This document shows, piece after piece, positions 3,732 through 42,507 of a stretch of 64,000 bases of DNA. The position numbers were made by a program, and so were the translations under genes. Where the stretch lies: positions 185,194,001 through 185,258,000 of the forward strand of contig NC_042998.1 in assembly GCF_006345805.1 (NCBI RefSeq). The letters are read 5' to 3'. Numbering within the stretch: position 1 is the stretch's first letter; each line of letters starts with the position of its first letter. The notes below the pieces were generated by a model, which had not been told where the DNA came from, made no database searches, and saw only the letters and a program-made list of their open reading frames with translations. Source of the stretch: Octopus sinensis (taxonomy: Eukaryota).

Positions 3732-3771
<40 letters not shown>

Positions 3772-18698: not shown

Positions 18699-19132
18699 GG
18701 ATCTTTTCGGTTTGAACGGCAGTTTTTTTCTAGCGGTGTCATATGAAATTGTCACCCATAATTATGTCCCTAGTATCGATCTATTGCATTTCAATCTGTT
18801 TTAGGGTTAGGGTTAGTTAGGGTTAGGGTTAGGGGTGGGGAGAAGGGTATCTTTTTTCTTCAGAAATGTAAATAAGCTCAATCTGTTTCTTAAACGAGGG
18901 ATATATTCATACGCCACAGAATGTTTTCACCTCAAATAGACGTCATTGATTGGTTGAAATTGCAGAAATTGAAGAAAAATAACAACAAATATCTTACAAA
19001 CTATAGAATTTTCTCAATAAAGCCAAGAGAAAAAGATGTTTTATAAACACATTCTACCAGTATACGAAGTTTAAAAGTGTTTAGTTACGTGGAAATTATT
19101 TTAAAAAACTGCCGTTCAAACCGAAAAGATCC
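18699..19132 (+). mobile_element. MITE family M copy 1 (29-bp TIRs, 8-bp TSD, internal TTAGGG repeats; Merlin-like)
   Basis: TIR ggatcttttcggtttgaacggcagttttt ... aaaaactgccgttcaaaccgaaaagatcc; TSD ctttctgc/ctttttgc; TTAGGG x5 at 18801-18835. Confidence 0.92.
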
Positions 19133-19755
19133 CTTTTTGCATTATGTAGCCACAGACCTCAAATTTACAGGCGTTTGATACAATCATTTAAATTGACTCC
19201 AGAACCTGAGTGTTACGTATTTCATCACCGCCTGAAAAACGAAAGACGAATTCAAATTCGATGTCATTCACATAGAGAACATAAAGGGAAATAACTAAAT
19301 ATAAAAGAAGCATTGCCGTTTTTGCCAATCCCCTGTCCTTCCTAAACCAAATATTAGCGCTTAAAATATAATACAATCAAAACAATTCGAAACAATTTGC
19401 TTTCCAAATATTCAATATTAACTTTACCCAAACAAACCGTTGCACTACAATAGTCAAGTTAACACCATTTTGGAATTAATATCGTGCAACTGTGAAACAC
19501 CATCACAAAAAAAAAAAAGAAGAAAAGAAAAATTAGAAGCTATTAATAACGTTATTCAGTTCCTTCAGCTCAATAAAGAAAATCGAAAAAAGAAATATAT
19601 GTAATAACTTGAAGTATTTGGCTGTTCGATGAAGGAGCTGTTCAAAATTTAGTCTCGAATTAATCTCATGACATAACTTCTCAGTTTTTATACTAAAATG
19701 TAAATGTAGTTTTACTCACTTAACAAGCAATGGTAGGAATACTTGTATATCTATC

Positions 19756-20202
19756 GGATATTTTCGGTTTGACCGGCAGTTTTTTCTAGCGGTGTCATAT
19801 GAAATTGTCACCCATAATTATGACCCTAGTATCGATCTATTGCATTTCAATCTGTTTTAGGGTTAGTGTTAGAGTTAGGGTTAGTTAGGGTTAGGGTTAG
19901 GGCTAGGGGTGGGGGAAGGGTATCTTTTTTTCTTCACAAATGTAAATAAACCCAATCTGTTTCTTAAACGAGGGAATATTAATACGACACAGAATGTTTT
20001 CACCTCAATAGACGTCATTGATTGGTTGAAATTACAGAAACTGAAGAAAAAAACCCAAATATCTTAGAAACTATAGAATTTTCTCAATAAAGCCAAGAGA
20101 AAAAGATGTTTTATAAACACATTCTACCAGTATACAAAGTTTAAAAGTGTTTAGATACGTGGAAATTATTTTTAAAAACTGCCGGTCAAACCGAAAAGAT
20201 CC
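19756..20202 (+). mobile_element. MITE family M copy 2
   Basis: Same TIRs (gacc variant on both ends); perfect TSD tatctatc at 19748-19755 and 20203-20210. Confidence 0.92.
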
Positions 20203-20930
20203 TATCTATCTTTCAACAATAACTCCACATCGGTCCGTCAGCCATAATTTTTGCAGGCTCTCCTGGCCTGCTGAACTTAAAAGGTTGATACTCAGTTTCT
20301 TAGATTAGTGCCTGAGGCCAAAATATTGTAAACAAGGTGAGAATTTGGAGGGTATAAGACAATGTAGAGATAATGAGAGGAACAGAGACGAATATATCTG
20401 AAGAGCTTGGAAGGTGGTGGTACACGGATTGCCAGTTCACAAGAAGCTACTATAGAGAAAATTGTGTCTGTAAGCTAAAGCCTAAATCTAAAGCTAAAGA
20501 AATATGCTTTAGCTAAAGCTAAAGCATATTTCAGAATAAGTTCTTCCCCATCCCTTTATCATTCTTGTAGGGGATGCACCAGGAATTCGATGCAACCGAA
20601 TCTTCGGTGATGAAACTGTGCAAATGCTTAAAAGTGACCTAAATAGTTTGTACTGTTCTTTAGCTAATTGTTTCAGATGCCTATGTAGTTGCCAGAAAAC
20701 ATATTCCCTCGGCCCTTCAACCCTTCATCCATCGAAGATGCGATAGCTGGAAGAAGAAGAGGAGGCGCTGCACCAGCACGCGGCTAATACTCGTTGTCAG
20801 TTAAGTACACCGGAACAACGTGAGGGGATATAATCGTTAGAGGGGGCCAACAGTGGGTTCATAAGAGAAGCAGACAAAATGTCATGCAATATTAAGTGAT
20901 ATTCCTTTACTTGTGATGTTTACTTTGCCT

Positions 20931-21378
20931 GGATCTTTTCGGTTTGAACGGCAGTTTTTAAAAATAATTTCCACGTAACTAAACACTTTTAAACTTCGTA
21001 TACTGGTAGAATGTGTTTATAAAACATCTTTTTTCTCTTGGCTTTATTGAGAAAACTCTATAGTTTGTAAGATATTTGTTGTTTTTCTTCAATTTCTGCA
21101 ATTTCAATCAATCAATGACGTCTATTGAGGTGAAAGCATTCTGTGGCGTATGAATATGTCCCTCGTTTAAGAAACAGATTGGGTTTATTTACATTTCTGA
21201 AGAAAAAAAGATACCCTTCCCCCCACCCCTAACCCTAACCAACCCTAACTAACCCTAACTATAACCCTAACCCTAAAATAGATTGAAATGCAATAGATCG
21301 ATACTAGGGTCATAAATTATGGGTAACAATTTCATATGACACTGCTAGAAAAAACTGCCGTTCAAACCGAAAAGATCC
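20931..21378 (-). mobile_element. MITE family M copy 3 (inverted)
   Basis: Same TIRs; perfect TSD ctttgcct at 20923-20930 and 21379-21386; (CCCTAA)n inside. Confidence 0.92.
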
Positions 21379-21715
21379 CTTTGCCTTTCATTCAATATTG
21401 GTCCAGTAAGCGAGTTGACTAAATTTAAAATACCCACCACCAAATGTAGTGCATTGTACCTATGTTAGAAATCTGTATAAGTCTATAAATAATGAACTAC
21501 TTCCTTGAACTAAGAGACAGGTTCAATATTTTGCGGGTAAGGTAAAATAGAATGAATTTAATGACATTTTTTATATTCTTTTATCGATCATTGAGGACTG
21601 GAATACTAAGTCGCTTTCGTTGGTACATAAAGTTTGCAGGAAAAGAGGTTTGAATTAAATAGTGTACGTATTGTGGTCTGGTGGTTTATCATTCTAACTC
21701 AGACCCTCTCATACT

Positions 21716-22064
21716 CATTTACTTGTTTCAGTCATTCGACCCCACGACTTATTCTTTGTAAGCCTAGTACTTAGTATATCGGACTCTTTTGTCGAACCGC
21801 TAAGTTACGGGGACGTAAACACACCAGCATCGGTTGTCAAGCGATGTTGGGGGGGATAAACACAACACACAAACATACACATATATATATATACATATAT
21901 ACGACGGGCTTCTTTCAGTTTCCGTCTACCAAATCCACTCACAAGGATTTGGTCGACCCGAGACTATAGTAGAAGACACTTGCCCAAGGTGACACGCAGT
22001 GGGACTGAACCCGGAACCATGTGGTTCGTAAGCAAGCTACTTACCACTCAACCACTCCTACGCA
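21716..22064 (-). mobile_element. tRNA-derived SINE family A (internally deleted near the tail)
   Basis: Matches the 22450-22836 copy along most of its length. Confidence 0.9.
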
Positions 22065-22105
22065 TCTATGTGTATAAATAATTTTAAATTCAGATTAACG
22101 TGTAA

Positions 22106-22325
22106 GGCGGCAAGCTGGTAGAGAGAATCCTTAGCACGGCGGACAAAATGCTTAGTAGCAACTTTTCCAGTATTTACGTTCTGAGTTCAAATTCGCCACA
22201 GTCAACTTTGCCTTTCGGGTCGATAAAATAAAGTACCAGTTAAGATCTGAGGCCGATGTAACCGACTTCCCCTCCCCCCCCCCCCCCACCAAAATTGCTG
22301 ATCTCATGCCAAAATTAGAAAGAAT
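22106..22325 (+). mobile_element. SINE B, old tail type, degenerate
   Basis: ggcggcaagctgg head, gagttcaaatt B box, ccccaccaaaattgctgatctcatgccaaaattagaa tail. Confidence 0.8.
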
Positions 22326-22449
22326 CTTAGATAAACGAGTAGCAGATATGTAAACTACTGTACAACGATAAACGAAAGTGCTTGAGAGATTTGACGCTAG
22401 CAGACTTATTCTGGTCGTAATTTATCAGTCTTTACTTTACTTTACTTTA

Positions 22450-22836
22450 CTTACTTGTTTCAGTCATTTGACTGCGGCCATGCTGGAGCACCGCCTTTAG
22501 TCGAGCAAATCAACCCCGGGACTTATTCTTTGTAAGCCCAGCACTTATTCTATCGGTCTCTTTTGCCGAACCGCTAAGTGACGGGGACGTAAACACACCA
22601 GCATCGGTTGTCAAGCAATGCTAGGGGGACAAACACAGACATACAAACACACACACATATATATATATATATACGACAGGCTTCTTTCAGTTTCCGTCTA
22701 CCAAATCCACTCACAAGGCATTGGTCGGCCCGGGGCTATAGTAGAAGACACTTGCCCAAGATGCCACGCAGTGGGACTGAACCCGGAACCATGTGGTTGG
22801 TTAGCAAGCTACTTACCACACAGCCACTCCTGCGCC
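22450..22836 (-). mobile_element. tRNA-derived SINE family A, full length
   Basis: Minus strand begins ggcgcaggagtggctgtgtggtaagtagc (A box) ... gggttcagtccc (B box), then ccttgggcaagtg-type core, an internal (TA/CA) microsatellite and a tail ending gactgaaacaagtaa. Confidence 0.93.
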
Positions 22837-23119
22837 TATAAACTTTGTCACAGTAAAAGTGTCTATCTTGCACCAATTCACTGAAGCTGTAAGCTCTTTG
22901 TTACTTCTGTTTCATCGTTCATTCTGGCGTCAAATCTACACAGCTTCATAACCATTAAAGTTAGCCGTCCTTTGTCAACCGGTTTCAGCTTAATCTTTTT
23001 AACGACACCCAAAGTTAGCTCATCCTTGAGACGGAGCAAAAAAAAGTCAACATCTCAAATTTTAACTATTTTCTACCCAGAAGACAAAACGGTTAGAGAA
23101 ACGATAGCGACGACATTGT

Positions 23120-23185
23120 TGTTGATGATAATAATGATAATGAGGAGGAGGAGGAGGAGGAGGAGGAGGAGGAACGATGGTGAAC

Positions 23186-23219
<34 letters not shown>

Positions 23220-23239
23220 GATGATGAACGATGATGAAC

Positions 23240-23270
<31 letters not shown>

Positions 23271-23560
23271 TTGATGATGATGAACGATGATGATGAACGA
23301 TGATGATGATGATGATTATGATGATGATGATGATGATGAACTATGATGATGATGAACGATGATGATGATGATGATGATGATAATGATGATGGTGATGATG
23401 ATGATGAACGATGATGATGATGATGAACGATGACGACGACGATGATGATGATGATGATGACGACGACGACGACGATGATGATGATGATGATGATTATGAT
23501 GATGACGACGACGACGACGATGATGATGATGATGATGATGATGACGACGACGAGGAGTTA
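23120..23560. repeat. (GAG)n/(GAT)n/(GAC)n trinucleotide array with a gaac variant
   Basis: Directly visible. Confidence 0.95.
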
Positions 23561-23884
23561 TGATGGTGTTAACGAGGAGGATTATCATCATTTCCAGTAG
23601 CGACAGTATCACCATCGTACTAGTCTTCCTTCTCCACCTCACCATCGTCATATTTGTTTGATTTTCATGGTTTTATATCAGGAGGCAAAGCCCCGGACCC
23701 TATACATTACACTCGTAGATCATTTGACTCTGTGATATTATTACTGCGGTGATGTTCAGATTGAACAACTGTAAGTTGGCGTTTGTATAAAAAAAAACGT
23801 GGGTGGGAAGAGGACTCTGGAAGGTTATGTCCTCTACAATGCGGCGCTGAGACGGGTCGTAGAATTCATTATCATAATTCTCGT

Positions 23885-24005
23885 CGTCGTCATCATCATC
23901 CTTGACACCATCATCATAAGCATCATCATAAACATCATCATAAACATCATGATAAACATCATCATAAACATCATCATAAACATCATCATAAACATCATCG
24001 TCACT
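23885..24005. repeat. 12-bp minisatellite (catcatcataaa)n
   Basis: Directly visible. Confidence 0.9.
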
Positions 24006-24089
24006 AACATATCCGTCACGATTGCTGCCATAGTTTCTCTCTTTAGTCATATTTTTAGCTTTGGTGTTTTACATTTTCTATTAATCTTT

Positions 24090-24233
24090 GTCTTCCTCCT
24101 TCCCTCTCCCTTCCTCTGCCTCTCTCTCTTTCTCTTTCTCTCTGTCTCTCTCTCTCAACGTTTCTGCCTTTCTTTCCCTTTCTCAATTCTTTCCTTCTTT
24201 ACGTTTCCCTCTCTTTCTCTTTGTCTGTCTGTT

Positions 24234-24272
<39 letters not shown>

Positions 24273-24470
24273 TTCTCTCTCTCTCACTCTCTCAACGTTT
24301 CTGCCTTTCTTTCCCTTTCTCAATTCTTTCCTTCTTTATGTTTCCCTCCCTTTCTCTCTGTCTGTCTGTTTCTTTCTCTCTCTCTCTCTCTCTCACTTTC
24401 TCTCTCTCTCCCTCTTTCTCTCTCTCCTCTCTCACTTTCTCTCTCTCTTCTCTCTCTCTCTCTTTCCCAT
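24090..24470. repeat. CT-rich tract with a ~140-bp tandem duplication
   Basis: ctctcaacgtttctgcctttctttccctttctcaattctttcc occurs at about 24150 and 24290. Confidence 0.85.
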
Positions 24471-24979
24471 ATTTTTGCTCCCACTCAATTACGGGCCCAT
24501 CACGTCTTTCTCAATGAAATCAAGCCATTTTTCGCTAACCAGAAACGTCTTTTTTTTTCTCTTTCTCTTTATATCCTTCTCTATTTCTCTTTACCACTAA
24601 CTAAATCTCCACCTACCTGTTTATCTCTCACTCTCTCCCCTTATACCTACCCATCTCTCCCTCTTTCTCTCTGTTTCCCTCCTTCTCTTCCTCACACTTT
24701 CGCCAACATACACTCAGCTCACCACCCATGCAACTAACTTTTGTTGGAGAAAGCTGGAAAGCAGGAAAACATAAGTACTCTGGTAACCAACGAGCAGGGT
24801 GAGATAGTGTAGAAAACAAACATAAAGAAGCGGGTGGGTGGTTTGAAAGGTCACAGGTTAGACATGAACAATGAATGGAGCGGAATAAATCATTTATCGA
24901 TGGTAAAACTAAACATTGCCTACTGAGGTGTGAAAACGATAGATGGCCATATGCAAAGGATGGAGAATCAACCGTTGAA

Positions 24980-24980
24980 A

Positions 24981-25061
<81 letters not shown>

Positions 25062-25164
25062 TATATACATGAATGAGTGTGTGCATATACGTGTGTACAT
25101 GTGTAAGTATATGTGTATATTATTCATATATATATGCGTGTATATATGTATATATAATATATGT

Positions 25165-25208
<44 letters not shown>

Positions 25209-25245
25209 ATATACATGTATTATGTGTGAATATATATATATATAG

Positions 25246-25307
<62 letters not shown>

Positions 25308-25348
25308 TATATATGTATGTATGTATGCATATATATATGTATTATGTG

Positions 25349-25396
<48 letters not shown>

Positions 25397-25459
25397 CACA
25401 CACACACGCGCGCATTTAGCGTGATAAACAGATGGCGATATGTGTGTGTGTGTGTGTAT

Positions 25460-25552
<93 letters not shown>

Positions 25553-25610
25553 CATATACATATATACATACACACATACTCACACATACATACATGCATA
25601 TATGTGTATG

Positions 25611-25647
<37 letters not shown>

Positions 25648-25664
25648 ATACATATATATATACG

Positions 25665-25744
<80 letters not shown>

Positions 25745-26290
25745 GTTTGCATATGTCTAAACATATATACACATGCACACATACACACATTGCACAGTTA
25801 CACACACACACAGACATTGCACAGTTATACACACACATAATGTTAATTATATGTATGGTTATGTATGGTGCATGCATACAATATGTATCTGTATGTATGT
25901 TTCCAGACATGCAAGCTGTGCGTGCATTTATGATTCTGCACATTTGCATGTATATGAGTGTTTATGTTATACGTGTGCGAGTGTATGTATGTATGTACGT
26001 ATGTATATATGTATGTATTGTATGTATGTATGTATGTATGTATGTATGTATGTACGTACGTATGTATGTATGTATGTATGTATGTACGTACGTATGTATG
26101 TATGTATGTATGTATGTATGTATGTATGTATGTATGTATGTATGTATGTATGTGTATGTACGTACGTATGTATGTATGTATGTATGTATGTATGTATGTA
26201 TGTATGTATGTATGTATGTATGTATGTATGTATGTATGTATGTATGTATGTATGTATGTATGTATGTATGTATGTATGTATGTATACGTG
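24980..26290. repeat. Long compound (TA)n/(TG)n/(TATG)n microsatellite block
   Basis: Directly visible. Confidence 0.95.
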
Positions 26291-26660
26291 TGCATGTATA
26301 AAGGATAGTGTTGAATTTAAACCCCTGCTCAACATGTAGGAGTCTTTCAATCGTTGCTTGGCAACGGTAATAAGTTATTACAATGAGGTTTGGAAGGTGT
26401 TTGGTTAGCGAAACTCCTAAAATACCCAACAAGCCAGTGACCATATCTTACTGTTGTTTGTTTTTATGACCCCCCCTCAATAAACGTTTACCGATCGATC
26501 CTTGTGAAACAGTAAACCTAAACTTAAGCATGCTGTTGTTTCTATTCCCTTAATTCCCCCCCCCTCACCGACGCATCTGGAAACACGAACGTTACAACTT
26601 GATCTGTGTGTGTGTGTGTGTGTGTTTTGCTAGTAAGAATCTATTATTTAGAATACACGA

Positions 26661-26860
26661 GGCGGTGAGTTGGCAGGATCATTAAACGCGTCGGACAAAA
26701 TGCTTAGCGGTATTTCGTCTGTCTTTGCCTTCTGAAGTCAAATTCCGCTGATGTCGATTTTGTCTTTCGTTTTTTTCTGGATCGATGAAATAAGTACCCA
26801 CTGAAAACTGAGGCCGATGTAATCGACTAGCCCCTACCCCTAAATTCCATGCATCGTACC
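26661..26860 (+). mobile_element. SINE B, old tail type, degenerate
   Basis: ggcggtgagttggcagga head and core motif. Confidence 0.75.
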
Positions 26861-28193: not shown

Positions 28194-28225
<32 letters not shown>

Positions 28226-30930
28226 TACTCTTCTGGTAATTAATTTATGTTTTGAAAAAAAGTTGATAATTAAGAATACGTTTTCGCCATAATATGCAAA
28301 ATAGTATCTTAGTTCCAGTTTGTATGTGATCCAGTGACCCGACGAGATAATCTCATTATTGGAAATGACACTCTCCAACCATGAAATGAAAGAGTAGCCT
28401 TCTCTCAAGAACTATATTATTAAAGTTGTTTTGTTGATTATTTCCATAATAACGAACGGAATTTTCAGAGTTGCGTCTTCAGTACATTTTTTTACGACAA
28501 TTCTATGTAAGATATCTATCCTAATTACGGAATTCAAGATGTGTTCCCTGTGCGGTGGTCAAGTTACCTTAATTTCCATCGCTTATGCAGTGAGGGTGCT
28601 TTTCATATTTAGTAAATCAGAGGAAAGGGCACAGTAACTTTGCTGGTCCAATTCCATGACTAAGAGAGAGCGAAAACACTTGATGTTCAACTTAAATAGG
28701 TCGGCCCCTGAAGAATAGAAAAAAAATAAGGTGTTAGGAAACAATTTCAAAAGGCTGAAATTCTGTGGTGGAATGATTTGATAATGTGTTTTGAGTACAC
28801 TCTAGGCGTATGATAAGGCCAGGGGAACGGGTGTGGCTGATGAGCTTGGCTAGAGGGTGTATGCAGCTGATTTCAAGGATAAAACATCTAACCGAAATAA
28901 ACAAATGTGCATGAGACAGGAGAAAAGGTCTATGGTAGATCTGTCTTCAGCATTTATGCTGGTGGTAGATAAGGAAGATAAGAATTTGGGGACGAGGCGC
29001 GTTGTCATGTATTACATAAGTTTAGAGTAATCCCTGTCGACAGAAGAAGAAAGATCGAAAATTTAATGAAAATAACAGCCAAGTCACTGTTAAAGGTTAA
29101 TAAAATGAATATTCTCAAGTCTAGTCGTCATGATTAGGTTGACATGATTAGAGGGTTGTCAATATTTGGTGATTGTACTCACATAGAGAAGTAGAAAAGG
29201 CAAATTTAGGGGAGACATCTTATTGTCTGTACGTACATTGTGATGTTAGAACGGGCAGATCATGTAATGGCTCCATCAACAGAAGTCGATGAGAGAGGTG
29301 GGTCTTTTTGGCTGAGGAATATTACGTTGAAAGGTAATCCTACCAAGTTGACGTATATATATTTAGAAAGGAAGTCTTTGACAAGCATTATCTTTTTGTC
29401 AAGAATGAACCATATTTGTAATCAAGTGTAGTCCTTGTAGAACTAGTAAAGATTTTATCTACTATCTGACTTGAAATACCATAATGATGTATTGTAGGAA
29501 GATATGAATTAAGTTGCAGACAATAAAATTGCTACAGAAACGGTCTTAATTTAGTAAAGTTGCGTAAGAAAGATAAGAAAGATGTTTGTTAGTTTGTCAG
29601 TAAGATAGAAATATGAATAGATGAAGAGAGTAACTGCTGTAGATATTTCAGAATATTAAACATATGAAACAAATATGTTTCTGCACCAGTTTAGAAGAAT
29701 GAAAACAACATGAGATGTGTGCATCGAAGTTACCAGGGATGATGACATACTTGGAGTGTAAGTTGAGTTAGATGTGTTCAGTGTAAGACGAGGAACAATC
29801 GAAGAAATCTTGTTGCTTAGAAGAGTTCGGTGCAGCAGATGAATATAGAATAATAACGAATCCAGGTTTTGAACCAGGCTATCCAAATGGCACAGTTCCT
29901 GATATTTGGGTGACTGAGTAGAATAATTGGTTATATATTATTTTTGGTTTATGTAGGTGGTTTATTAGTGATATTTATATATGTTATTAGTCTTATTCCC
30001 AATTTAATTTTTTTTTTCTAATGGATTAATTATGTATATATTAATTGGGTTTTTTGGGGTTTTTTTATAAATATAATTTCTATATATTATTATTTAGATG
30101 TAAGCATAATAGATATGAAGATAATGGAGATTAAATTTGTGAGTTTAGGTATATCTATATTATGGTTAAAGAGTAAAATAGAAAGTTTGTAGAATCGTTA
30201 GAGCGTCGAACAAAATACTTAGCGGCATTTGCTTCTGCTATTCCCATTCGAAAACCAAATTTAACTGTAGTTAACTTACTCTGTCATCTACTGAGATCTA
30301 TAACAGTACCGGGAACTGATGATATCGACTAACCCTCCATCGCCTCAAAACAGCTGGCCTTGGATCTAACTTAGGAACAACTGCTATTCTAAAAGAGTTA
30401 CGGCCAGGCCTGTATATTTAGATGATGCAAGATCGCCTAACTCTCAATACTCAGTCCCCTATATTATAAAAAGAAGGTATCATAGAATGGTACCGTATAA
30501 TCTAACTTCTCTCTGAAAGGTGGTGTCTGCCAGCACGGAATCATACATTCCAGCGCGCCACCTTTGCAATAACAATAATAATAAGGAACTCTACAATGGT
30601 AGAGTAAGATAAAATGAAGCCGCTTGTGTGATAACAAGACGGGAGAGAAGACCTCGTTAGTGACTTCCTCATTCATCATTAGTGTTGTCACTAAAAGATA
30701 TCGTAGAATGTATTATAGAAGATATGGTTAGTGTTAAAAAATATAAAAGAGTGTGTGAAAAGCAAAACGAAAAGTTTGGACGGTATAAAGCTTGAAGAGA
30801 GAAATGTACGTGGGGCATGACTTTGAAGTCATGTCATACTGGTAGTAATGTGCCTTAGAGGCAATAACAACGAAAAGACATTGAATTACGAACTTTGGAA
30901 TTGAGATTTACTCTTTACTCTCTTTTACTC

Positions 30931-31311
30931 TTTTACTTGTTTCAGTCATTTGACTGCGGCCATACTGGAACACCGCCTTTAATCGAGCAACTCGACCCCG
31001 GACTTATTCTTTGTAAGCCCAGTACTTATTCTATCGGTCTCTTTTGGCGAACTGCTAAGTGACGGAGACATAAACACACCAGCATCGGTTGTCAAGCAAT
31101 GCTAGGGGGACAAACACGCACACATATATATACATATATATATATATACGACGGGCTTCTTTCAGTTTCCGTCAACCAAATCCACTCACAAGGCTTTGGT
31201 CGGCCCGAGGCTATAGTAGAAGATACTTGCCCAAGGTGCCACGCAGTGGGACTGAACCCGGAACCATGTGACTGGTAAACAAGCTACTTACCACACAGCC
31301 ACTCCTGCGCC
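30931..31311 (-). mobile_element. SINE family A, full length
   Basis: Near-identical to 22450-22836. Confidence 0.93.
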
Positions 31312-31489
31312 CAGAGAACTTCTTCAGAAGATTGTACTATTAAGAAGAAACAGCTCGGATTCTTGAGAAATTTTTTGCAATGCAAGAAAGGAAGAATATT
31401 TTAAAGGACATTTAATCATTTGTTATGGCTCATTTTGGCTTGTAGAAACGATGATACTAACAATTTGTAATATAGATTTAAAACCATAC

Positions 31490-31845
31490 ATTTTGTGGAA
31501 GTTGTTGATTTTACTTTTACGGATTTCATGGACAGCGAGGTTCACCAATGGAGAAGTTCTTAAGCAGATAAGGCCGAAAATGTCGCTAGAAGCTAGGATC
31601 ACCAAGCATAGATTGGCATACTCCGGTCATATTATGCGGAGAAAATCCCTGGAGGACATCATGCTCGGAATGGTCAGTGGCAAGAGAGGAAGAGGCCGAC
31701 CAAGAACCCGCTGGCTTGATACATCAAGAGTGATACCGGAATGGATATAGCCAATCTGAAAGAAGCGGCCCAGGATAGAACTGACTGGAGGACACTGATC
31801 CAACGAGTGACCGAGAGTCGACTTCGACTGAGCGGATAGAAAGAG
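31490..31845 (+). mobile_element. RTE-clade (BovB-like) LINE 3' end
   Basis: RISWTARFTNGEVL...RLAYSGHIMRRKSLEDIMLGMVSGKRGRGRPRTRWLD, then ...LKEAAQDRTDWRTLIQRVTESRLRLSG*; typical RTE ORF2 C-terminus. Confidence 0.9.
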
Positions 31846-32749
31846 AGAGAGAGAGAGTTGATTTTAAATGATCCCTAGTAATTGAATGGTGTTTGTTTTA
31901 TCAACACCGGAATGATGAAAGCTGCACTTAACCTAGGCGGGATTTGAACAAAGAACTTAGGGATGTATCTAAACACCGCACCGCCTTTAATCAGTTATTA
32001 CACCGCCGATTCCGCCATCCACCACCCTTAGAGTTAACAATATATTAAAACAAACAAGCAGCTAAAGTGTGATATTAAAGAATTATAGAAAAATACAAAC
32101 AAGAGGAGAGAGTTGTAAACATGATTTTATGTTCGCGTCATAAAATTAAGACATATCTAATGATTTGAATCAACTAACACATAATAAAGATAAATGAATA
32201 AAACTAAACATAAATGACGAAATGTGTTGAGATTTTTCACTCTCGTATACATAACAGACACACAAACACACACAAACAAACACACACGTATGTATATATG
32301 TATATACATACACACACATACATTCATGCATACGTACATTCAGCCACACACACATACGCACAGAGAGAAACGTATGTACGGTGGTCATTAGATGCGTCTT
32401 AATCAGAAAGTAAGACAACTTTATACAAATTAAATCATTCCAGGCAATTTCTCTGCTTGTTTAGTTCTGCATGAAAACAACAGTTAAGACAACAATGTCA
32501 TAACATCTCTATTGAATGGCTTAATTGTCCACCCTTCTACCCACCGCTTGTCTTTCTGTCACCCTTTCTTTTGTATTCCAACAAATATTGCGACCGTTAC
32601 TTCAGTTTCTGATCCGCCATTTCAGCCGTATATAATATTTTAGCGCACCTTTCCATGGCGTTATTATTGTCGCTATGACAACCGCTGTCATTTTATTACA
32701 GTCGCTACGATGAATGTCATCGCCGTTCTTGTACATTCACTTTTTCTTC

Positions 32750-33278
32750 TCGCCCCCATTTCACTCACTCCCTCTCTCTCTCTCTATCCCCCACTCTCTC
32801 TCTCTCTCTCTCTCCACCGTATTATCTCTTTCTGTCTCCCTCTGTAATTCCCCTTCACAAAAGCCGTTTTACTTTCACTTTCTCTCTGCCCCTCTTCCTC
32901 TCTCTCTCTCTCTGTCTCTGTCTCTCTGTCTCTCTCTCTCTCTCTCCACCGTCCTATCTCTTTCTGTCTCCCTCTTTAATTACCTTTCACAAAAGCCATT
33001 TTACTTTCACTTTCTCTCTCCCCCACTCTCTCTCTCCCTCTCTCCCTCTCTCTCTCTCTCTCTCCTCTCTCCCTCTCTCTCTCTCTCTCCACCGTCCTAT
33101 CTCTTTCTGTCTCCCTCTTTAATTCCCTTTCACAAAAGCCGTTTTACTTTCACTTTCTCTCTCCCCCACTCTCTCTCTCTCTCTCTCCACCGTCCTATCT
33201 CTTTCTGTCTCCCTCTTTAATTACCTTTCACAAAAGCCATTTTACTTTCACTTTCTCTCTCCCCCACTCTCTCTCTCC

Positions 33279-33318
<40 letters not shown>

Positions 33319-33730
33319 CCGTCCTATCTCTTTCTGTCTCCCTCTTTAATTCCCTTTCACAAAAGCCGTTTTACTTTCACTCTCTCTCTCCCCCACTCTC
33401 TCTCTCCCTCTCTCCCTCTCTCTCTCTCTCTCCACCGTCCTATCTCTTTCTGTCTCCCTCTTTAATTCCCTTTCCCAAAAGCCGTTTTACTTTCACTTTC
33501 TCTCACCCCCACCCCCTCTCTCTCCTCCGTATTATCTCTTTCTGTCTCCCTCTTTAATTCCCTTTCACAAAAGCCGTTTTACTTTCACTTTCTCTCTCCC
33601 TCACTCTCTCTCTCTCTCTCTCCCTCTCTCTCTCTCCACCGTCCTATCTCTTTCTGTCTCCCTCTTTAATTCCCTTTCACAAAAGCCATTTTACTTTCCC
33701 TTTCTCTCTCCCCACCCCCCACTCTCTCTT
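32750..33730. repeat. Polypyrimidine minisatellite, about 8 units of 95-140 bp
   Basis: Core tccaccgtcctatctctttctgtctccctctttaattccctttcacaaaagccgttttactttcac starts near 32814, 32946, 33088, 33186, 33316, 33431, 33526 and 33636, separated by (CT)n. Confidence 0.95.
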
Positions 33731-33959
33731 TCTCTTTCTCTCGCTTGCTCGCTCGCACTCTGTGTGTGTGTCGTGTCTTCCTAGCTCACAAACTGCTCTC
33801 TTTTCCTCTTGACCGTCTGCGATCGCTTTCAGCAACCTCTCCCACAATTTTCCTTCTGCTGTCCTACCCATACCACACACTCCCTACTTACTCCCAACTT
33901 CACCCACTTTTCAACCCTCCTGCCCTGTTTCTTTTCCTTCATTGTTTTTGTTATTCTAC

Positions 33960-33979
33960 ATTCTTTTTTTCTTCTTTCT

Positions 33980-34031
<52 letters not shown>

Positions 34032-34108
34032 ACTTCCTTTCTTTCTTTCTACCTATATGCATGCATATAGGTACAGATATACATATATACATATATATAT
34101 ATATATAC

Positions 34109-34194
<86 letters not shown>

Positions 34195-34399
34195 GATAGA
34201 TAGATAGATATAATTATACATATATATATGTGTATATACATATGTATGTATATATATATATATATATATATACATATATATACATATATTTGTGTGTATA
34301 TACACATATATGTGTATATGCATATATATGTGTATGTCTATATACATATACATGTGTATATGCATATATATATTTGTGTGCGTATATACATACGTGTAT

Positions 34400-34440
<41 letters not shown>
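33960..34440. repeat. (CTTT)n plus (TA)n/(TG)n/(CA)n microsatellites
   Basis: Directly visible. Confidence 0.9.
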
Positions 34441-35075
34441 CAGTTCTCCTCTCTTTCTCTGTCTCATTCTCCCAGTTACTCCAACATCACCGCTTACAAC
34501 CGCTAAATCACTCCTACTGCCTCTACACACAAACCTCTTACCATTACACTCTACCCCTCTACCCTCTACTCTTCGCTCTGCCCTTCAACCATTACACCCT
34601 TATCCTCTCCCTCTACCGCAGCAAACACCACCTCCCCCCAAAAAAACACACCGGCACCTCCCTTCCCTACACCCTCCTTCGACAACATAACAAGACGATT
34701 AACAATTCAACCCTGACTGTGATTGTTATCGTGACACTGCTGTTACTTTTATGGTCACACCTATTATTGAATGAACGGGTTCAGCCTAAACACGGCGGCG
34801 GTGGGGTTGGTGGTGGTGGTGGTGGTGGTGGTGGCGGCGGCGGAGGTCGTCGTCGTCGTTGTCGTTCGAGTTGACGGTGGCGAAGAGACAATGATAACAA
34901 TAAGACGATGCCTTGTTATTATTATTATTTAACCACGGTGAGTTCTGATCGGGAAGGCAGGCCTATGCTCAAAGCCAATCCAGCCGTACCCATCAAGTCA
35001 TTTCATAGGAGTATGTGGGACTATATTGACGGCGGGACTATATTGCTCACTCTATTCAACTATTTTTCAAGAAAT

Positions 35076-35287
35076 GGCGTAAGAGTGGCTGTGCAGTGGC
35101 TGTGGCGTAGGAGTAGCTGTGTGGTAAGTAGCTTGCTTATGAACCACATGGTTCCGAGTTCAGTCCCACTGCGTGGCACCTTGGGCAAGTGTTTCTACTA
35201 TAGGCTAGGGACGACCAAATCCTTGTGAGTGGATTTTGTAGACGAAAACTGAAAGAATCCCGTCGTATATATGTATATCTATCTATC

Positions 35288-35320
<33 letters not shown>

Positions 35321-35351
35321 GAGGGCATTATTACACATAAATGCCACACGC

Positions 35352-35408
<57 letters not shown>

Positions 35409-35625
35409 ATATATATATGTGTGTGTGTGTGTGTCTGTGTTTGTTCCCCCAACATCGCTTGACAACCGATGCTGGTGTGTTTACGTCCCCGTAACCTAGC
35501 GGTTCGGCAAAAGTGACCAATAGAATAAGTACTAGGCTTACAAAGAATAAGTCCTGGGGTCGATTTGCTCGACTAAATGCGTTGCTCCAGCATGGCCACA
35601 GTCAAATGACTGAAACAAGTAAATG
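35076..35625 (+). mobile_element. SINE family A with duplicated head and expanded internal microsatellite
   Basis: ggcgtaagagtggctgtg...ggcgtaggagtagctgtgtggtaagtagc head duplication; B box gagttcagtccc; tail gactgaaacaagtaaatgagtaaa. Confidence 0.92.
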
Positions 35626-35789
35626 AGTAAATGAATTGGGATGGTGGTTCGTAATGATAGTTTTGACAGCGGAGTAGAGGTGATAATAGATATGATGGTG
35701 TTTGATGGAAGCGTTGGAGGCGGCGGAGGCGTAAGTGGAGGCGGCAGTAGTGACGGCATCGATGGAGGTAGAGGTGGCGGCAGAGAAGG

Positions 35790-35849
35790 CAGCAACGGCA
35801 GCGGCGGCAGCGGGGGCAGCGGCGACGGCAAAAGCGGCGACGGCGGCGA

Positions 35850-35899
<50 letters not shown>

Positions 35900-35933
35900 G
35901 CGACGGCGACAACAGCGACGGCGGCGGCGGCGA

Positions 35934-35992
<59 letters not shown>

Positions 35993-36086
35993 GCGACGGT
36001 GGCGGTGGCGGAGATTGCGGCGACCGCGGTGGCAGAGAAGGCAGCAACGGCAGCGGCGACAGCGGTGACGGCGGCGACAACGGCGA

Positions 36087-36136
<50 letters not shown>

Positions 36137-36145
36137 GCGACGACG
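35790..36145. repeat. GC-rich 9-bp minisatellite (GGCGACAGC)n
   Basis: Directly visible; the unit has no stop codon in any frame on either strand. Confidence 0.95.
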
Positions 36146-36479
36146 GCTATGGTAGTGGCGATGATCATTTTAGGAATATATTGGACAATATTTATTGTCT
36201 CTAGTGAGGTCGATCATTTCCCAAGAGGATATGGTGCGATCTAAGGAAGGTTTGCTGCTATTTCTAGCTGGTCAAGTGACTGCGTAGACGTGGTAATGAT
36301 GTTTGGTAACGTCGGTAGTACTGGTGGTAGTGATGATGGTGGAGTTGGAGGGTTGAGACGGTGGAAGTTCGGAGTGAGGGTGCTAAAGGCGGGGTAGTAG
36401 TAGGTGGTATAATGGTGGTGGTTGGTAAGTTATGTCAGTGGTTGTGGCAATAGGGGTCGTAGTGGTGATTGGTGGAGGT

Positions 36480-36900
36480 AATGGCTGTGGTGGGGGAAGG
36501 CATGTGCATGGAAATAGTTGTGGTGAAAGTGGTGGTGGTGGTGGTGATGGTCGTTGTTGTTGTTATGGTAGTGGTGGTGGTGCTGGTGGTGGTGGTGGTG
36601 CTGGTGGTGGCGGTGCTGGTGGTGGTGCTGGTGGTGGTGGTGGTGATGGTTGTTGTGGTGGTGTTGGTTGTAGTGGTGATGGTTGTTGTGGTGGTGTTGG
36701 TTGTAGTGGTGATGGTGGTGGTGGTACTGCTGGTGGTGGTTGTGGTGGTGGTGATGGTTGTGGTGGTGGTGATAGTTGTGGTGGTGATGGTGGCGGTGGT
36801 GGTGGTGGTGCTTGTGGTTGGGATGGTGGTGGTGGTGGTGGTGGTGGTGGTGGTGGTGGTGGTGGTGGTGGTGGTGGTGGTGGTGGTAGCATCGGTGGAC
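36480..36900. repeat. (GGT)n-based trinucleotide array
   Basis: Directly visible. Confidence 0.95.
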
Positions 36901-37977
36901 GGTTGTAATAGGGCTGCAGGAGGTGGTAGCGTTAGTCTTGTTGATGCTGTTGTCGTCGTTGTGAGTTCTACATCTGACCTTTCTAAAGATGTTAGTCGTA
37001 ACCACGTCATTTTTTCCCCCTGCAACTACATTATTTCTCTCTTCGTGTTTGGTGATTTGAAAGAGATTTTTGGCTGTCATTTCTAGTATAGAATGTTGCT
37101 CGAAAGCAATTTGAATAACTGTGGGTCAGATAACCGTAGGTAGATGGGGTGGTTGCTGTTGTGTTTCTTAGTGGTGATGACGTCCATGATAGCGGATGGA
37201 AGGTAACATGATTGTGGTGGAGCGGATTTTTATGACTACAACACGTGCTGACATGTGGATGAGGGTAGGAGTAATATGTATGTGTGCGTATGTGTATGCA
37301 TGTGTGCGTGTACCTGTGTGTGTATGTGTCTAAGCGTGTGCGCATATGTGCTTGTGTGTATGTACATATATATGTGTGTGTTGTGTCGAAATTGCGGTGA
37401 AATCCATCCGACAGCTGACGAGGAAATTGTACGTTGTTAGTAACCGTTTGTGTTTCGTTTTTGATTTTGTTGTTTATCATTTTTTTTTGTTTTTGTCTAT
37501 TTTACTTGTGCCTTTGTTTCGTTTCTTTATAAAGACTTTTCTGTATATATGCATTTGTGTGTGAGTGTGGGTGTGTGTATACACACATACATTCTTACAT
37601 GTGTGCATACTTACATGTGTGCATACTTACATGTGTGTGTGTGATATCTTCGGATAGAACTCGTGTTTTTGGTTATCAGATTGATATGCTTGTCTAACAT
37701 CACATGACGTTTTCTTCAACATTACTACAATACATTGAAAACCATAAATATGTTTTGCTGATAAGCTAAACCACAGTAAAGAAGCTGATGATGTACAGAA
37801 ATGGCATTCGAAATTTGTCGTCAAGAATTAGAGTTGTGAATTACGGTCAGTGTTGCTTGTTGATAAGTTTTTGAATATTGTTATTGTGTGTGTTTAACGC
37901 ACCTTTGTTTTACTGCTTTGCGTCGGTCTTGTTATGGTTTTTCCCTTGTTTGAGGGGGGAAGCGCTTTTGGTATAAC

Positions 37978-38995
37978 ATGAATACTGTTGTAAAAGGTTA
38001 AGTCATTCTGACGTGGATTCGTCAGAGAGTGAATTGATGGAATTCTTGGAGAACATAGAGGAGGAGCTTTCAAGTGGAAAAAGTATAATCGATGTTGACA
38101 ACAGAGAAAATCAAAAGTTTTGCGGCCGCGGCCGAAATGCTAGATCTAAAGAAGTTCAAGGACCTGTTGAAAAAGGAAGAGCACGTAACTGAGCTGACCT
38201 CTCCAAGCAGAGTTACTCAAGATACATTGAAGAATACAATAATATTTAAAACGTTTATAGTCAAAGAGAAAAAAACAGATGTGGCAACAAGGGTCCAAAT
38301 CGAAAAGTGCTTGGGACCCAACTGGCTGGAAATTACGCATCTAGCCAAGGGTAACAAATATGCTTCATAGAAGTGCGGTTTCAAACAGAGGAAATGGCCA
38401 GGCAAAACTCCGTTACCCCCACCCCCGAAGACGGGTGAAATGATTCTTCTACCATCATGCGAACTTTCAGAGTAAGGATCGAAGAAATCCACTATAAATG
38501 GATGTTGCCTGGCTGGCAGCGGCGATAACATTAGGTTTGGTGGAGAGGATAACAATCCACCAAGCATCAAGAATACCAAAACAAAACTGGTTAGAGCAAC
38601 GGCTGGAGATGATCTTCCAGGTTGCCTCGGAGGACATAGAAAGTATAGTGGACACATTTTGGTGGGTGACAAGAGATTGAGAGTAGGGGTAGAGAGCAGG
38701 AAACCTCGATGCTTCAAGTGCGGCCAGAAAAAACAAATAAGAGTAGATTGCCCTCAACCTCCCGCAAAAGTACCGATGGTACCTCCAGTGGTGAAGGAAA
38801 CCGCACATCCACCTCATACGGCGACAAATATGGAGACGAAGGAGAAATGTGATGAGGAAGAGATAAAGACACCAGATGAGAAAAAAATTTACCAATGTCC
38901 CTAAGAGGAAAAGGAGAAAGAGAAGGAATAACCACTTCACAGATACTAGCCCCCACCCAACCACCATTGACACCAACCCATTTGACACTGACCCA
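37978..38995 (+). mobile_element. Degenerate L1/Tx1-clade LINE ORF1 (zinc-knuckle protein) remnant
   Basis: Frameshifted frames 38092..38370, 38498..38680 and 38659..38904 join into a LINE ORF1-like protein with KPRCFKCGQKKQIRVDCP (C-X2-C-X4-[H>Q]-X4-C at about 38710) followed by a K/R- and P/T-rich tail. Confidence 0.75.
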
Positions 38996-39005
38996 GAACC
39001 TGCAA

Positions 39006-39170
39006 ACACGACAGGCTTCTTTCAGTTACCGTCTTCCAAATCCACTCAGAACGCTTTGGTCGCACCGGGGCTACAGAAGAAAACAGTTGCCAAGGTGTTA
39101 TGTAGTGAGATTGAACCCGAAGTCATCTGGTAGGGAAGAAAGCTTCTGATCACACATCCATGCCTCTGTC
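39006..39170 (-). mobile_element. Degenerate SINE A 5' fragment
   Basis: acgacaggcttctttcagttaccgtc...ccaaggtg...gattgaacccg. Confidence 0.75.
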
Positions 39171-39572
39171 TATCCACAGCCATACCTCGTATACGTATGA
39201 AATATATGTGTACGATATGCGTATGTGTATCAGATAGCTAAATGCATCGTTCAGACTGATGCAGGCCAGCTTTAATATGCCATTGGATTGCCCATCGAGT
39301 GACAGGGAGATCAGTAAATGTCGATGTTAAATATACAATAAATTGTTTCTGAAAGTTTTCAAAATATATGGGATGAGTGTGAAACCTACGAGGATGATTC
39401 ACCATATTGCCGGCTATTAGAAACGTAGAAGGAATTGTCTGGTTTTTTTTATATGGTTTACGTTCTTTTCACGAAATGCACATTTTCACGACGTGCACTC
39501 ATTTTGTGCTCCTCATCGTATGTCTCAAAAGTACATATGAGGTCATGCGCGTAATATTATCTATGAAAGTAA

Positions 39573-39790
39573 GGCGGCAGGATGGCAGAATCGTTAGCAC
39601 ACCGGGCAAAAAGCTTAGCGGCATTTCGTCCGACTTTACGTTCTGGGTTCAAATTCCGCCGAGGTCGACTTTGCCTTTTATCCTTTTGGGGTCAATGAAA
39701 TAAGTACCAGTTGAACACTGGGGTCGGTGTAATTGACTTGGCTCTCCCCCGAAATTGCTGACTTTGTACCAAAATTTGAAACCAATATTA
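39573..39790 (+). mobile_element. SINE B, old tail type
   Basis: ggcggcaggatggcagaatcgttagcac...gggttcaaattccgccgaggtcgactttgcc...ctcccccgaaattgctgactttgtaccaaaatttgaaacc. Confidence 0.88.
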
Positions 39791-39794
39791 TTTA

Positions 39795-40265
39795 TGAGAG
39801 TGTTTATCCATCTAGCCAGGCGACTTGTCCGGATCAATGTAAATCCTCCATGCCAGATGTCCCGATCTTCCATAAGGATTTTCATATTTTCGACTTGATT
39901 TCCAGCGTCTTCCACAAGCCGATCGATATCTGTTCTTGTTGGTCTGCCGATACTTGTATGTCAATGCGTGGGATCTCAGAGAAAGAAATCGCTGAATATT
40001 TCATCTTTGCTTCTCCAGCAGTGTTCTGCATAACGTGTTTTTCCTTATCTGATTTCCGAAGCGTTTGTAGGAAGACTGCCATATAGTCGCTGACAAGAAG
40101 TAAAGAAATACATATAGTTGCTGACAAGAAAGATTGAGAAACGCATGGAGCATTCTCGAGTAATGTACCGTCAGCTTCTTTACAAGTCTCTTGTTTAGTA
40201 CCCAAGCTAAAGAACCATAGAGAAGTACTGATTGAACGACTATTTGAAGAAACCCGTCTGAGAGT
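39795..40265 (-). mobile_element. RTE/RTE-X-type LINE 3' end, degenerate
   Basis: FLQIVVQSVLLYGSLAWVLNKRLVKKL...YSRMLHAFLNLS, then HTSIGRPTRTDIDRLVEDAG...MEDRDIW; frameshifted. Confidence 0.82.
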
Positions 40266-40374
40266 GTAAGTATACATATATCGTTGGATATCATAGTTAT
40301 GTGCCTGTACACCGTACATATGTGTATTGTCCTCTGTGTGTTTGTGTGTGTGTGTGAGCGCGAGAGTGACATGC

Positions 40375-40426
<52 letters not shown>

Positions 40427-40589
40427 TGTAATGTATCTTAATGATATTGGTATTATTTGATAACTTGTCCCTTTCGTAGAATCACTCGAGTGTCATAGTC
40501 GGGTGCAGCTTCACAAAATGAACGATTGAAAACAGCTGCTGAAAAATGAAACTGAAACTCTTCTTAAGTTTATTGTATTTCATACGCTT

Positions 40590-40752
40590 AAAATGTTGGT
40601 TTCAAATTTTGGAACAAGGCCAGCAATTTCAAGGAGGAGGATAGTCGAAAGGATGAAAGACAAAGTCAGCCTCGGCGGAATCCGATCGCAGAGACGTCTG
40701 AAATGCCGTTAAGTATTCTACCTGACCTGCTAAAAATTCTGCAAGCTCGCCG
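40590..40752 (-). mobile_element. SINE B, degenerate and internally deleted
   Basis: ggatgaaagacaaagtcagcctcggcggaat...aaattctgcaagctcgcc. Confidence 0.7.
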
Positions 40753-41099
40753 TTTCCATTTGCTTATAAATATTAAGTAGAGAAGGAATTTAGTTTTGAC
40801 TATATAGTAATTACCAAGAAGTAACATTTAGCTTCGACCTTACACTAAAAAGCATTAAAATTGTATAAAAGTAGGCTTTGTTAGCATTTCACAAAGATCT
40901 CATTTTATGTCGAAGAAAATGTATCAAATCTACAAGAGGACTGAATACCATTTCTTTGAATTATGAAAACTTTTAATAAAATCATTTTGTTTTATTTCTC
41001 TTATCTTTTATTTTCTACTTAATTCATTCATTGGCCTTGCTAGTGCATCGCCTTCGAGGGTTTAATTGAAAACATGAGCCACAATATTAATTTTTTAAA

Positions 41100-41290
41100 G
41101 TCAAGTACTTATTATGTCGGTTTCTTTTGCTGAACCGCTAAGTTACCGGATCATAAACAAACCAACTCCAGTTGTCAGCACAAACGCGCGCGCGCGTATA
41201 CGACGGGTTTCTGCACAGTTTCCGTCTACCAAATTCACTTACGTCTATAGTAGATGAAATTCGCTCAAGATGCTGTGCAGTGGGACTGAA
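41100..41290 (-). mobile_element. Degenerate, deleted SINE A
   Basis: gaaccgctaagttac...acgacgggtttctgcacagtttccgtctaccaaat...cagtgggactgaac. Confidence 0.7.
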
Positions 41291-42058
41291 CTTGTTTAAT
41301 ATATTCATTCAATGTCTTTATAAAACTTTCCTTTGTGCCAATTTCCTCTTTCAAACTCCTACACTTCACCTCATAAACTAATTTTGATATTGGAGTTTAA
41401 ACATAGCTCTGTCAGATCTGTAATAATTGTAGCGGTACTATTAAATACTTCCAGAAAGTTCAAGGCTGCTAAAAAGATTCTCCGCTGAAATATAATTCAG
41501 ATTTGGTAAGCAATCGGTAAACCTAGACCGCAATACAATTCCAATGTTGGTTGAAACCATTTCATTTCACTTTCGCCAAGAATGCTCTGGAGAGAGGGCA
41601 GGAACACTATACTGCTAATTTTCTCTTCCTATACTTTACAGTGCCTTTGTGTCTAGACAAAAAGAAATCAATATTCTAAAAATATTTTCAAGAAAATAAT
41701 TTCCTGAAAACATTTTTTTTCTTCTTTCACTAATCTAGACCTGAACGAAGAATACGATGTTTATATTTTAAAACTGGGTAAATGCAGCCACAAAAGACAC
41801 GCATGACTGTTCCTTCTGTAAACATCTATGTTAGTTAAAATTATGAACCTGCATTTCTTGAATAATCGGTAAAAAGAATGTTTCTTAAAACATATTTGCC
41901 GATCATATTTTAAGGATATATCTTGATTTCTGCGCAGGATTTTTTTATATTCTTTTCTTAGTTTAGAAGATTGTCCTAGGAATGCATGCAGAAGTTTATT
42001 CTAAGCATACTTTTTATCAATACTCTTTTTAAGATTTCTAACAATGGAAATATTTTCT

Positions 42059-42473
42059 AGATCTTTTCGGTTTGACCGGCAGTTTTTAACATAATTTCCA
42101 CGTAACTAAACACTTTTAAACTTCGTATACTGGTAGAATGTGTTTATAAAACATCTTTTTCTCTTGGCTTTATTGAGAAAATTCTATAGTTTGTAAGATA
42201 TTTGTTGTTGTTTTTTCTTCAATTTCTGCAATTTCAACCAATCAATGACGTCTATTGAGGTGAAAACATTCTGTGCCGTATGAATATGTCCCTCGTTTAA
42301 GAAACAGATTGGGTTTATTTACATTTGTGAAGAAAAAAGATACCCTTCCCCCCACCCCTAACCTAACCCTAAAACAGATTGAAATGCAATAGATCGATAC
42401 TAGGGTTATAATTATGGGTGACAATTTCCTATGACACCGCTAGAAAAAACTGCCGTTAAAACCGAAAAGATCC
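42059..42473 (-). mobile_element. MITE family M copy 4 (inverted, shorter TTAGGG tract)
   Basis: TIRs with 1-2 substitutions; perfect TSD tattttct at 42051-42058 and 42474-42481. Confidence 0.92.
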
Positions 42474-42507
42474 TATTTTCTTGAAACATTTCTAAAATAT
42501 CTACTCT

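Follow-up and report, generated by a model that had tools for sequence, protein, structure and literature searches.

A probably Merlin-type miniature transposon family with an internal TTAGGG array in Octopus sinensis

The Merlin transposon superfamily, related to bacterial IS1016/IS1595, has GG termini, terminal inverted repeats (TIRs) of 24-462 bp, target site duplications (TSDs) of 8-9 bp, and a DDE_Tnp_IS1595 transposase (Feschotte, 2004, as summarised in PMC8101967); the same source counts 191 Merlin proteins in Octopus bimaculoides. A stretch of 64,000 nucleotides of the Octopus sinensis genome (GCF_006345805.1, contig NC_042998.1, positions 185,194,001-185,258,000, forward strand; the window, in what follows) holds four copies of a miniature inverted-repeat transposable element (MITE) that resembles Merlin in its 5′-GG termini, in its TIRs of 29-30 bp, which fall within the reported range, and in its 8-bp TSDs. 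Furthermore, octopus is rich in Merlin genes, and the 3′ terminus and subterminal block of the MITE resemble the end of a stretch that carries an octopus DDE_Tnp_IS1595 gene. Unlike Merlin elements proper, the window MITE lacks a transposase of its own, no matching intact autonomous element was present among the loci examined, and it contains an internal telomere-type array, a feature that the consulted passages of PMC8101967 do not mention for Merlin. We assign a probability of about 0.75 to the overall account, by which this is a Merlin-type, non-autonomous octopus MITE that carries the TTAGGG array as passenger cargo.

The nearest functional analogues are molluscan MITEs that contain tandem repeats, namely DTC84 of Donax trunculus and the pearl-related elements of oysters. 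These are likewise non-autonomous, with inverted-repeat flanks that serve as a cassette for a variable internal array, the length variation of which makes every copy unique (PMC3879986). In these elements the putative target duplication is AA, the inverted repeats are short, and there are core repeats of ~160 bp plus a microsatellite (PMC3879986), as opposed to the 8-bp TSD, the GG-starting TIRs of 29-30 bp and the 6-bp telomere-motif array of the window MITE; the transposition machinery is evidently different. A second point of comparison is provided by mammalian short interstitial telomeric sequences (ITSs), which are described as inserted during double-strand-break repair (PMC7215372). As in those, short (TTAGGG)n occurs here at internal sites, and telomerase or repair is a plausible source of the progenitor array; unlike those, the MITE arrays are copied with the transposon, share interruptions, have degenerate repeats, and border on a G-run of non-telomeric sequence. 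Among cephalopods, TTAGGG is the sole telomere motif to have been determined by experiment (PMC13218726). Literature searches found no described case of a MITE with an internal telomere array. Among recently active elements, a 2026 repeat annotation of Octopus vulgaris counts 65 MITE families and 2 Merlin families, and because these are listed without details, the present family may already sit unnamed in a library.

The four copies that an earlier note on this DNA had delimited were all recovered by a TIR scan and by BLAST against the window. Copy 1 (18699-19132, + strand, 434 bp) has TIRs at 18699-18728 and 19103-19132 and is flanked by CTTTCTGC (18691-18698) and CTTTTTGC (19133-19140), which match at 7/8 positions. 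Copy 2 (19756-20202, + strand, 447 bp), the most divergent, lies between perfect duplications of TATCTATC (19748-19755 and 20203-20210). Copy 3 (20931-21378, - strand, 448 bp) is inverted relative to copies 1 and 2 and has the perfect TSD CTTTGCCT (20923-20930 and 21379-21386). Copy 4 (42059-42473, - strand, 415 bp), with a shortened tract and a mutated terminal base (AGATC...), has the perfect TSD TATTTTCT (42051-42058 and 42474-42481). Thus, the claim that each copy has a TSD of its own was borne out, with a length of 8 bp in 4/4 copies. The TIR, GGATCTTTTCGGTTTGA[A/C]CGGCAG..., is perfect in copies 1 and 3. Searched as the 29-nt GGATCTTTTCGGTTTGAACGGCAGTTTTT with up to 3 mismatches, it gave 8 matches in the window, which form four inverted pairs, and 0 in 100 dinucleotide shuffles; seven of the eight MITE termini begin with GGAT, the left end of copy 4 (AGAT) differing by a single substitution. 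BLAST of each copy against the window returned only the four full-length units and their TIRs, and no fragments.

The longest open reading frame (ORF) of the MITE is no longer than 65 aa, and its translated frames, used as a pseudo-protein, had no match in a set of 5.8 billion proteins. The analysis supports the four units as MITEs, with TIRs, 8-bp TSDs, no coding capacity, and independent insertion into unique DNA. Outside the repeat tract, pairwise divergence among the four copies is 2.9-6.3%; the copies are independent, moderately old insertions. Three of them lie inside 2.7 kb, as would also be seen if the units had arisen by segmental or tandem duplication of a local repeat; this explanation is rejected because flanks and TSDs differ between copies, and we give it practically no weight. 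Each copy is flanked by a separate 8-bp direct duplication, the copies do not all point the same way, the DNA between the clustered copies is unique and shows no resemblance from one spacer to the next, copy 4 is 21 kb away, and a second species carries a homologue that has a TSD of its own. If 4 insertions were placed uniformly over 64 kb, finding three start points inside 2.2 kb would have p ~0.014. The mixed-orientation cluster of copies 1-3, which taken as a group are not one another's closest relatives, is compatible with local hopping or with an insertion-prone site.

The TIR variants are partly as previously described: copies 1 and 3 have GAAC at both ends and copy 2 has GACC at both ends, but copy 4, which the description had passed over, is mixed, with one GACC end and one TAAC end, and has A instead of G as its first base. 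The proposal of subfamilies from these variants hangs on the single divergent copy 2, and copy 4 mixes both variants.

Relatives of one octopus Merlin protein, taken from the PMC8101967 supplement, were collected and their loci retrieved. A connection to the window MITE is seen at an O. bimaculoides locus (LGKD02092233.1; L009) that contains a Merlin ORF (P0004, 3223-4056, PF12762). At 4602, 546 bp downstream of this ORF, there is a terminus (...AAAAAAGATCC / ...AAATGTGGCCCCCGTTTTAAAAAAGATCC), of which the final AAAAGATCC is identical to that of the MITE 3′ end. The last 133 nt before 4602 match the MITE 3′ end at 26/30 positions, at a similar offset from the terminus (alignment score 40, compared with a shuffle mean of 18 and maximum of 38; z 7.7). 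The 3′ subterminal block of the MITE, AAACACTTTTAAACTTCGTATAC (read from the terminus inward), which occurs at 19060-19082 (-), 20130-20152 (-), 20981-21003 (+) and 42108-42130 (+), has a 21/23 match to the sequence beside this terminus. The same 133 nt are 88% identical over 59 nt to the left end of an adjoining MITE at the same locus (z 23).

This adjoining MITE (5575-6284, 710 bp) has a perfect 8-bp TSD (TAACGTTG) and the TIR GGATCTTTGGGGTTTGACGGGCAAC. It is a composite that consists of a complete element (5792-6284) and, attached to it in inverted orientation, an incomplete copy of the 3′ half (5575-5791). This composite transposed as a single unit with that TSD, and the central telomere-like array is present in both orientations. 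The inner 493 bp of the composite align colinearly to the window MITE (E 8e-29 over 167 bp), and the two have in common the GGATCTTTTC start, the telomere-like array, an ACGTCA/CCAAT block, the 3′ subterminal region, and the terminus. In the ~112 kb of octopus DNA examined besides the window, this was the one related element, accompanied by two fragments.

Just inside the L009 terminus is ACTTTCACTTCTGACAGCTAATAGCATGATAGTGCCC, which is found inverted upstream of the Merlin ORFs of two further octopus loci (L017 and L010), partially upstream of the L009 ORF, and in direct orientation downstream of the L017 ORF. Because it recurs in inverted form across the Merlin ORFs of all three loci, ACTTTCACTTCTGACAGCTAATAGCATGATAGTGCCC belongs to the inverted ends of the Merlin element, so that the L009 terminus most likely represents the genuine end of a Merlin and not a MITE fragment that strayed there. 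For a control, three intact elements of 2.3-3.0 kb in another eukaryote assembly (ENA ERZ26052287: L020 4348-6871, L022 3875-6910, and L023 4544-6871) were found to contain transposases with 60% identity to the octopus protein, all with long GG-starting TIRs (beginning with GGAACTTCTTCGCAATTTCCCCGGT) and perfect 8-bp TSDs (CAATTTTA, GGGAATTT and AATGTTAT, respectively). These elements look recently active.

Several observations weigh against the assignment. Among the octopus Merlin loci examined, there is no complete autonomous Merlin bounded on both sides by GGATCTTTTCGGTTTGA... TIRs: the L009 copy loses its 5′ end in a microsatellite, and at L010 and L017 that end is interrupted by a MITE or decayed. 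Direct similarity between Merlin and the window MITE covers a short stretch (30 nt plus 9 terminal nt), and 1/500 shuffles came close to it; in principle, the L009 terminus might be the remnant of a lone MITE inserted next to a transposase gene. The family is represented by four copies only, and a further ~104 kb from O. sinensis and O. vulgaris contains none. Around five octopus Merlin genes (L006-L010), a search for GG...CC TIR pairs flanked by TSDs found none, the TIR-pair candidates at L010 proving to be inverted pairs of short interspersed nuclear elements (SINEs). Merlin contigs from Logan and ENA (L011-L016 and L018) have other TIRs or none, and no nucleotide similarity to the MITE. The 21-nt TIR core had 5 matches in the JGI metagenome, IMG/VR and GTDB collections, each of exactly 21 nt and on bacterial contigs, and these were dismissed as chance. 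As a separate observation, palindromic MITE-like insertions (for example ...AGAAGAGTGGTCCCGGTGCGCGCAC...GCTAGCTAGTCGTGACTAGTCGATCC...) lie within the non-coding ends of octopus Merlin copies (L017 11200-11590 and 11640-11880; L010 9420-9570).

Pfam was run on window ORFs with a length of 75 aa or more that a complexity filter had retained (74 ORFs), several microsatellite-derived ORFs having been dropped from the query. There was no DDE or hAT domain among these, the single result being a weak zf-RVT match in a fragment of a long interspersed nuclear element (LINE). Thus, on the evidence of the filtered ORFs, any autonomous partner is outside the window.

Other superfamilies also generate TSDs of about this length. 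In hAT elements an 8-bp TSD accompanies short TIRs that start with CAG/TAG (YARNG); P elements have 7-8-bp TSDs and TIRs that start with CA (CANRG); and Mutator-like elements (MULEs) usually have TSDs of 9-11 bp (sometimes 8-9), often long TIRs, and a MULE transposase as partner. The TSD length of the window MITE fits hAT, but its GGATC termini fit neither hAT nor the CA start of P; for Mutator-like elements, the 8 bp seen in 4/4 copies and again in the O. bimaculoides relative would be a borderline TSD length, and no MULE partner was found, though none was searched for. A MITE of hAT, P, a short-TSD MULE, Zisupton or Novosib, with the likeness to Merlin arising by coincidence or from a MITE fragment, would be in keeping with the short direct match to the Merlin-adjacent terminus and with the lack of an intact autonomous partner among the loci examined, given that an 8-bp TSD alone does not discriminate. 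Such an origin is nonetheless improbable in view of the GGATC ends, the contiguity of the L009 terminus with sequence that is inverted on both sides of Merlin ORFs across three loci, the GG TIRs and 8-bp TSDs made by related Merlin transposases, and the unusual abundance of Merlin in octopus (PMC8101967). The preference for Merlin over hAT or P expressed in the earlier note is accordingly upheld by termini, TSDs and the likeness to the end beside an octopus Merlin gene, but it is not proven, because no intact autonomous element sharing this TIR pair was found. On balance, we think it quite likely that the MITE family belongs to the Merlin superfamily.

The best-conserved internal block of the MITE, AATAGACGTCATTGATTGGTTGAAATT, occurs at 18935-18961 (+), 20007-20033 (+), 21100-21126 (-) and 42230-42256 (-). 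This block, AATAGACGTCAKTGATTGGTTGAAATT, combines ACGTCA (half of a cAMP response element) with an ATTGG/CCAAT box and is identical at 26/27 positions in the O. bimaculoides relative, where it is present at 5730-5756 and 6095-6121. The ACGTCA/CCAAT block and the 3′ subterminal region are the best-kept parts of the MITE in comparison with this relative. From its motif content, the block could be promoter-like or a putative transposase-binding motif. ACGTCA-containing repeats (TTTACGTCA and TGACGTCAGACGTCA; L017 11981-12046) fill the region upstream of the Merlin ORFs at L017 and L010.

In all four copies there is a TTAGGG-like tract of variable unit number that runs into GGGGTGGGG(GG)(A)GAAGGG, as the earlier note had reported. 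Copy 4 has ~2 units and copy 1 has ~5, and ~8 can be counted in each of copies 2 and 3. In copy 1, tract and G-run (18801-18847, + strand) read (TTAGGG)2 TTAG (TTAGGG)3 GTGGGGAGAAGGG; in copy 2 (19857-19920, + strand), several of the ~8 units are degenerate; in copy 3 (21214-21276), the G-rich strand is the minus strand; and copy 4 has a residual tract (42343-42372, - strand; TTAGGGTTAGGTTAGGGGTGGGGGGAAGGG). All perfect TTAGGG dimers of the window are inside MITE copies, with one degenerate match outside, at 26832. The suggestion that every copy could form a G-quadruplex (G4) is only partly sustained: copies 1-3 each contain a strict G4 motif, (G3+N1-7)x4, but copy 4 has a putative quadruplex only under a relaxed motif that admits an 8-nt loop. 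The window contains 4 strict motifs in total, 3 of them in these copies.

The truncated unit TTAG-TTAGGG is common to copies 1-3, and a variant third unit is common to copies 2 and 3. Because the copies share such interruptions, the array was inherited from a master copy rather than added at each insertion; the shared interruptions and the fixed position inside the transposed unit likewise led us to reject the arrays as independent telomerase insertions at breaks. In copies 1 and 4 the array was shortened later, and tract length varies in the manner of a microsatellite. The array of the O. bimaculoides relative, which is degenerate and partly palindromic, lies ~105 nt from the GGATCTTTTC start, compared with 102 nt in the window MITE; the telomere-like array, sitting at the same offset in both, is old.

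This age, with the array present in a ~66%-identical relative from another octopus species, is one reason to ask whether the TTAGGG/G-run is a selected functional module, acting as a platform for telomere proteins, as a G4, or as subterminal repeats bound by the transposase. The concentration of strict G4 motifs in the MITE copies points the same way. Furthermore, an unrelated O. sinensis inverted-repeat element (L010, VCDQ01004827.1, 7149-7601) has an internal TTAGGG-like array followed by GGGGTGGGGG, and a metagenomic Merlin contig (L019, ENA ERZ23499006 scaffold_47366) has 5 same-strand TTAGGG motifs in its non-coding ends (1-337 and 1289-1378), compared with ~0.7 expected. Conservation argues against such a role. 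Among the four window copies, the tract is the least conserved segment of the element, with 7.3% substitutions and 37% gapped positions as opposed to 4.6% and 2.3% elsewhere; copy 4 has lost most of its tract but kept both TIRs and its TSD. In the deeper comparison with the O. bimaculoides relative (66% identity), the tract is middling in conservation, and the ACGTCA/CCAAT block and 3′ subterminal region are better kept than the tract. Other Merlin loci show no TTAGGG enrichment. A selected module is therefore very unlikely.

What had been proposed as a spread of interstitial telomeric sequence through the genome is thus sound as a description, with a tract in every copy and nearly all TTAGGG dimers of the window inside the copies. 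The function that it implied, in telomere-protein binding or as a G4 module, is unsupported, because conservation is poorer in the tract than elsewhere in the element, the outcome that had been named beforehand as arguing against a function. A broader version of the idea draws on the L010 and L019 arrays: TTAGGG-like arrays would recur, and be retained, as a module in octopus inverted-repeat elements and in one clade of Merlin, either as subterminal repeats bound by the transposase or as a G4 or telomere-protein platform that aids persistence or shapes chromatin. This is in our estimate equally unlikely; if true, Merlin MITEs would be a main generator of interstitial telomeric sites in cephalopod genomes.

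The L010 element represents a second kind of octopus inverted-repeat element with telomere-like repeats; its arms are ~75-80% complementary, and its degenerate array of ~90 bp is followed by GAAGGGGTGGGGGC. The L019 contig encodes a Merlin transposase 52% identical to the octopus protein, and its non-coding ends also contain TCTAGGG variants and a TGATTGG...CGTCA pair.

By the mechanism that we favour, a Merlin (DDE_Tnp_IS1595) transposase would most likely mobilise the MITE in trans, recognising the GG-starting TIRs of 29-30 bp together with adjacent subterminal motifs; the element would be excised and reinserted at a staggered 8-bp cut, which would generate the 8-bp TSDs. The TTAGGG array and G-run were already present in the family ancestor and are passed by descent with each copy, array length shifting by slippage or deletion in the fashion of a microsatellite. 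The array of the progenitor may have come from telomerase-type filler at a repair or deletion junction, or from expansion of a pre-existing TTAGGG-like motif. As a by-product, each insertion seeds a short, telomere-like, G4-prone sequence at an interstitial site.

The finding by itself reveals no new mechanism, and the family is a real but fairly ordinary mobile element. It does tie a cephalopod MITE family, on sequence evidence, to the Merlin transposases that are so unusually abundant in Octopus, and it shows one route, as transposon passengers, by which short interstitial telomere-like and G4-prone sequences are scattered in the octopus genome. This is of use for repeat annotation and for the reading of ITS or G4 maps in cephalopods: such arrays in the octopus genome should not be taken for relics of chromosome fusion or for independent telomerase insertions.

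The surroundings of the copies are very rich in microsatellites and SINE-like repeats; Rfam had no match to the window. The SINE-like repeats, of ~235 and ~400 bp, are 84-95% identical to O. sinensis and O. vulgaris loci and are located at 21736-22073, 22429-22840, 30911-31311, 42502-42912 and 43256-43629, the last as a 184-bp x2 tandem; one of them directly adjoins MITE copy 4. These shared repeats confirm that the window comes from an octopus. Decayed coding pieces of retrotransposons are present at 8995-9306, 15536-16066, 31367-31747 and 38200-40500, and include an ORF for a reverse transcriptase N-terminus, the zf-RVT match, RTE-like C-terminal motifs and a CCHC knuckle, with no intact gene seen in the window. 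Very long compound microsatellite/minisatellite tracts with extreme strand skew occupy 1-5400, 32700-33750, 35800-36900 and 61000-62300; the satellite tracts comprise AC-rich units of 222 bp, a 48/141-bp array (4466-5423), CT-rich units of ~129-245 bp, and GTG and ATT runs.

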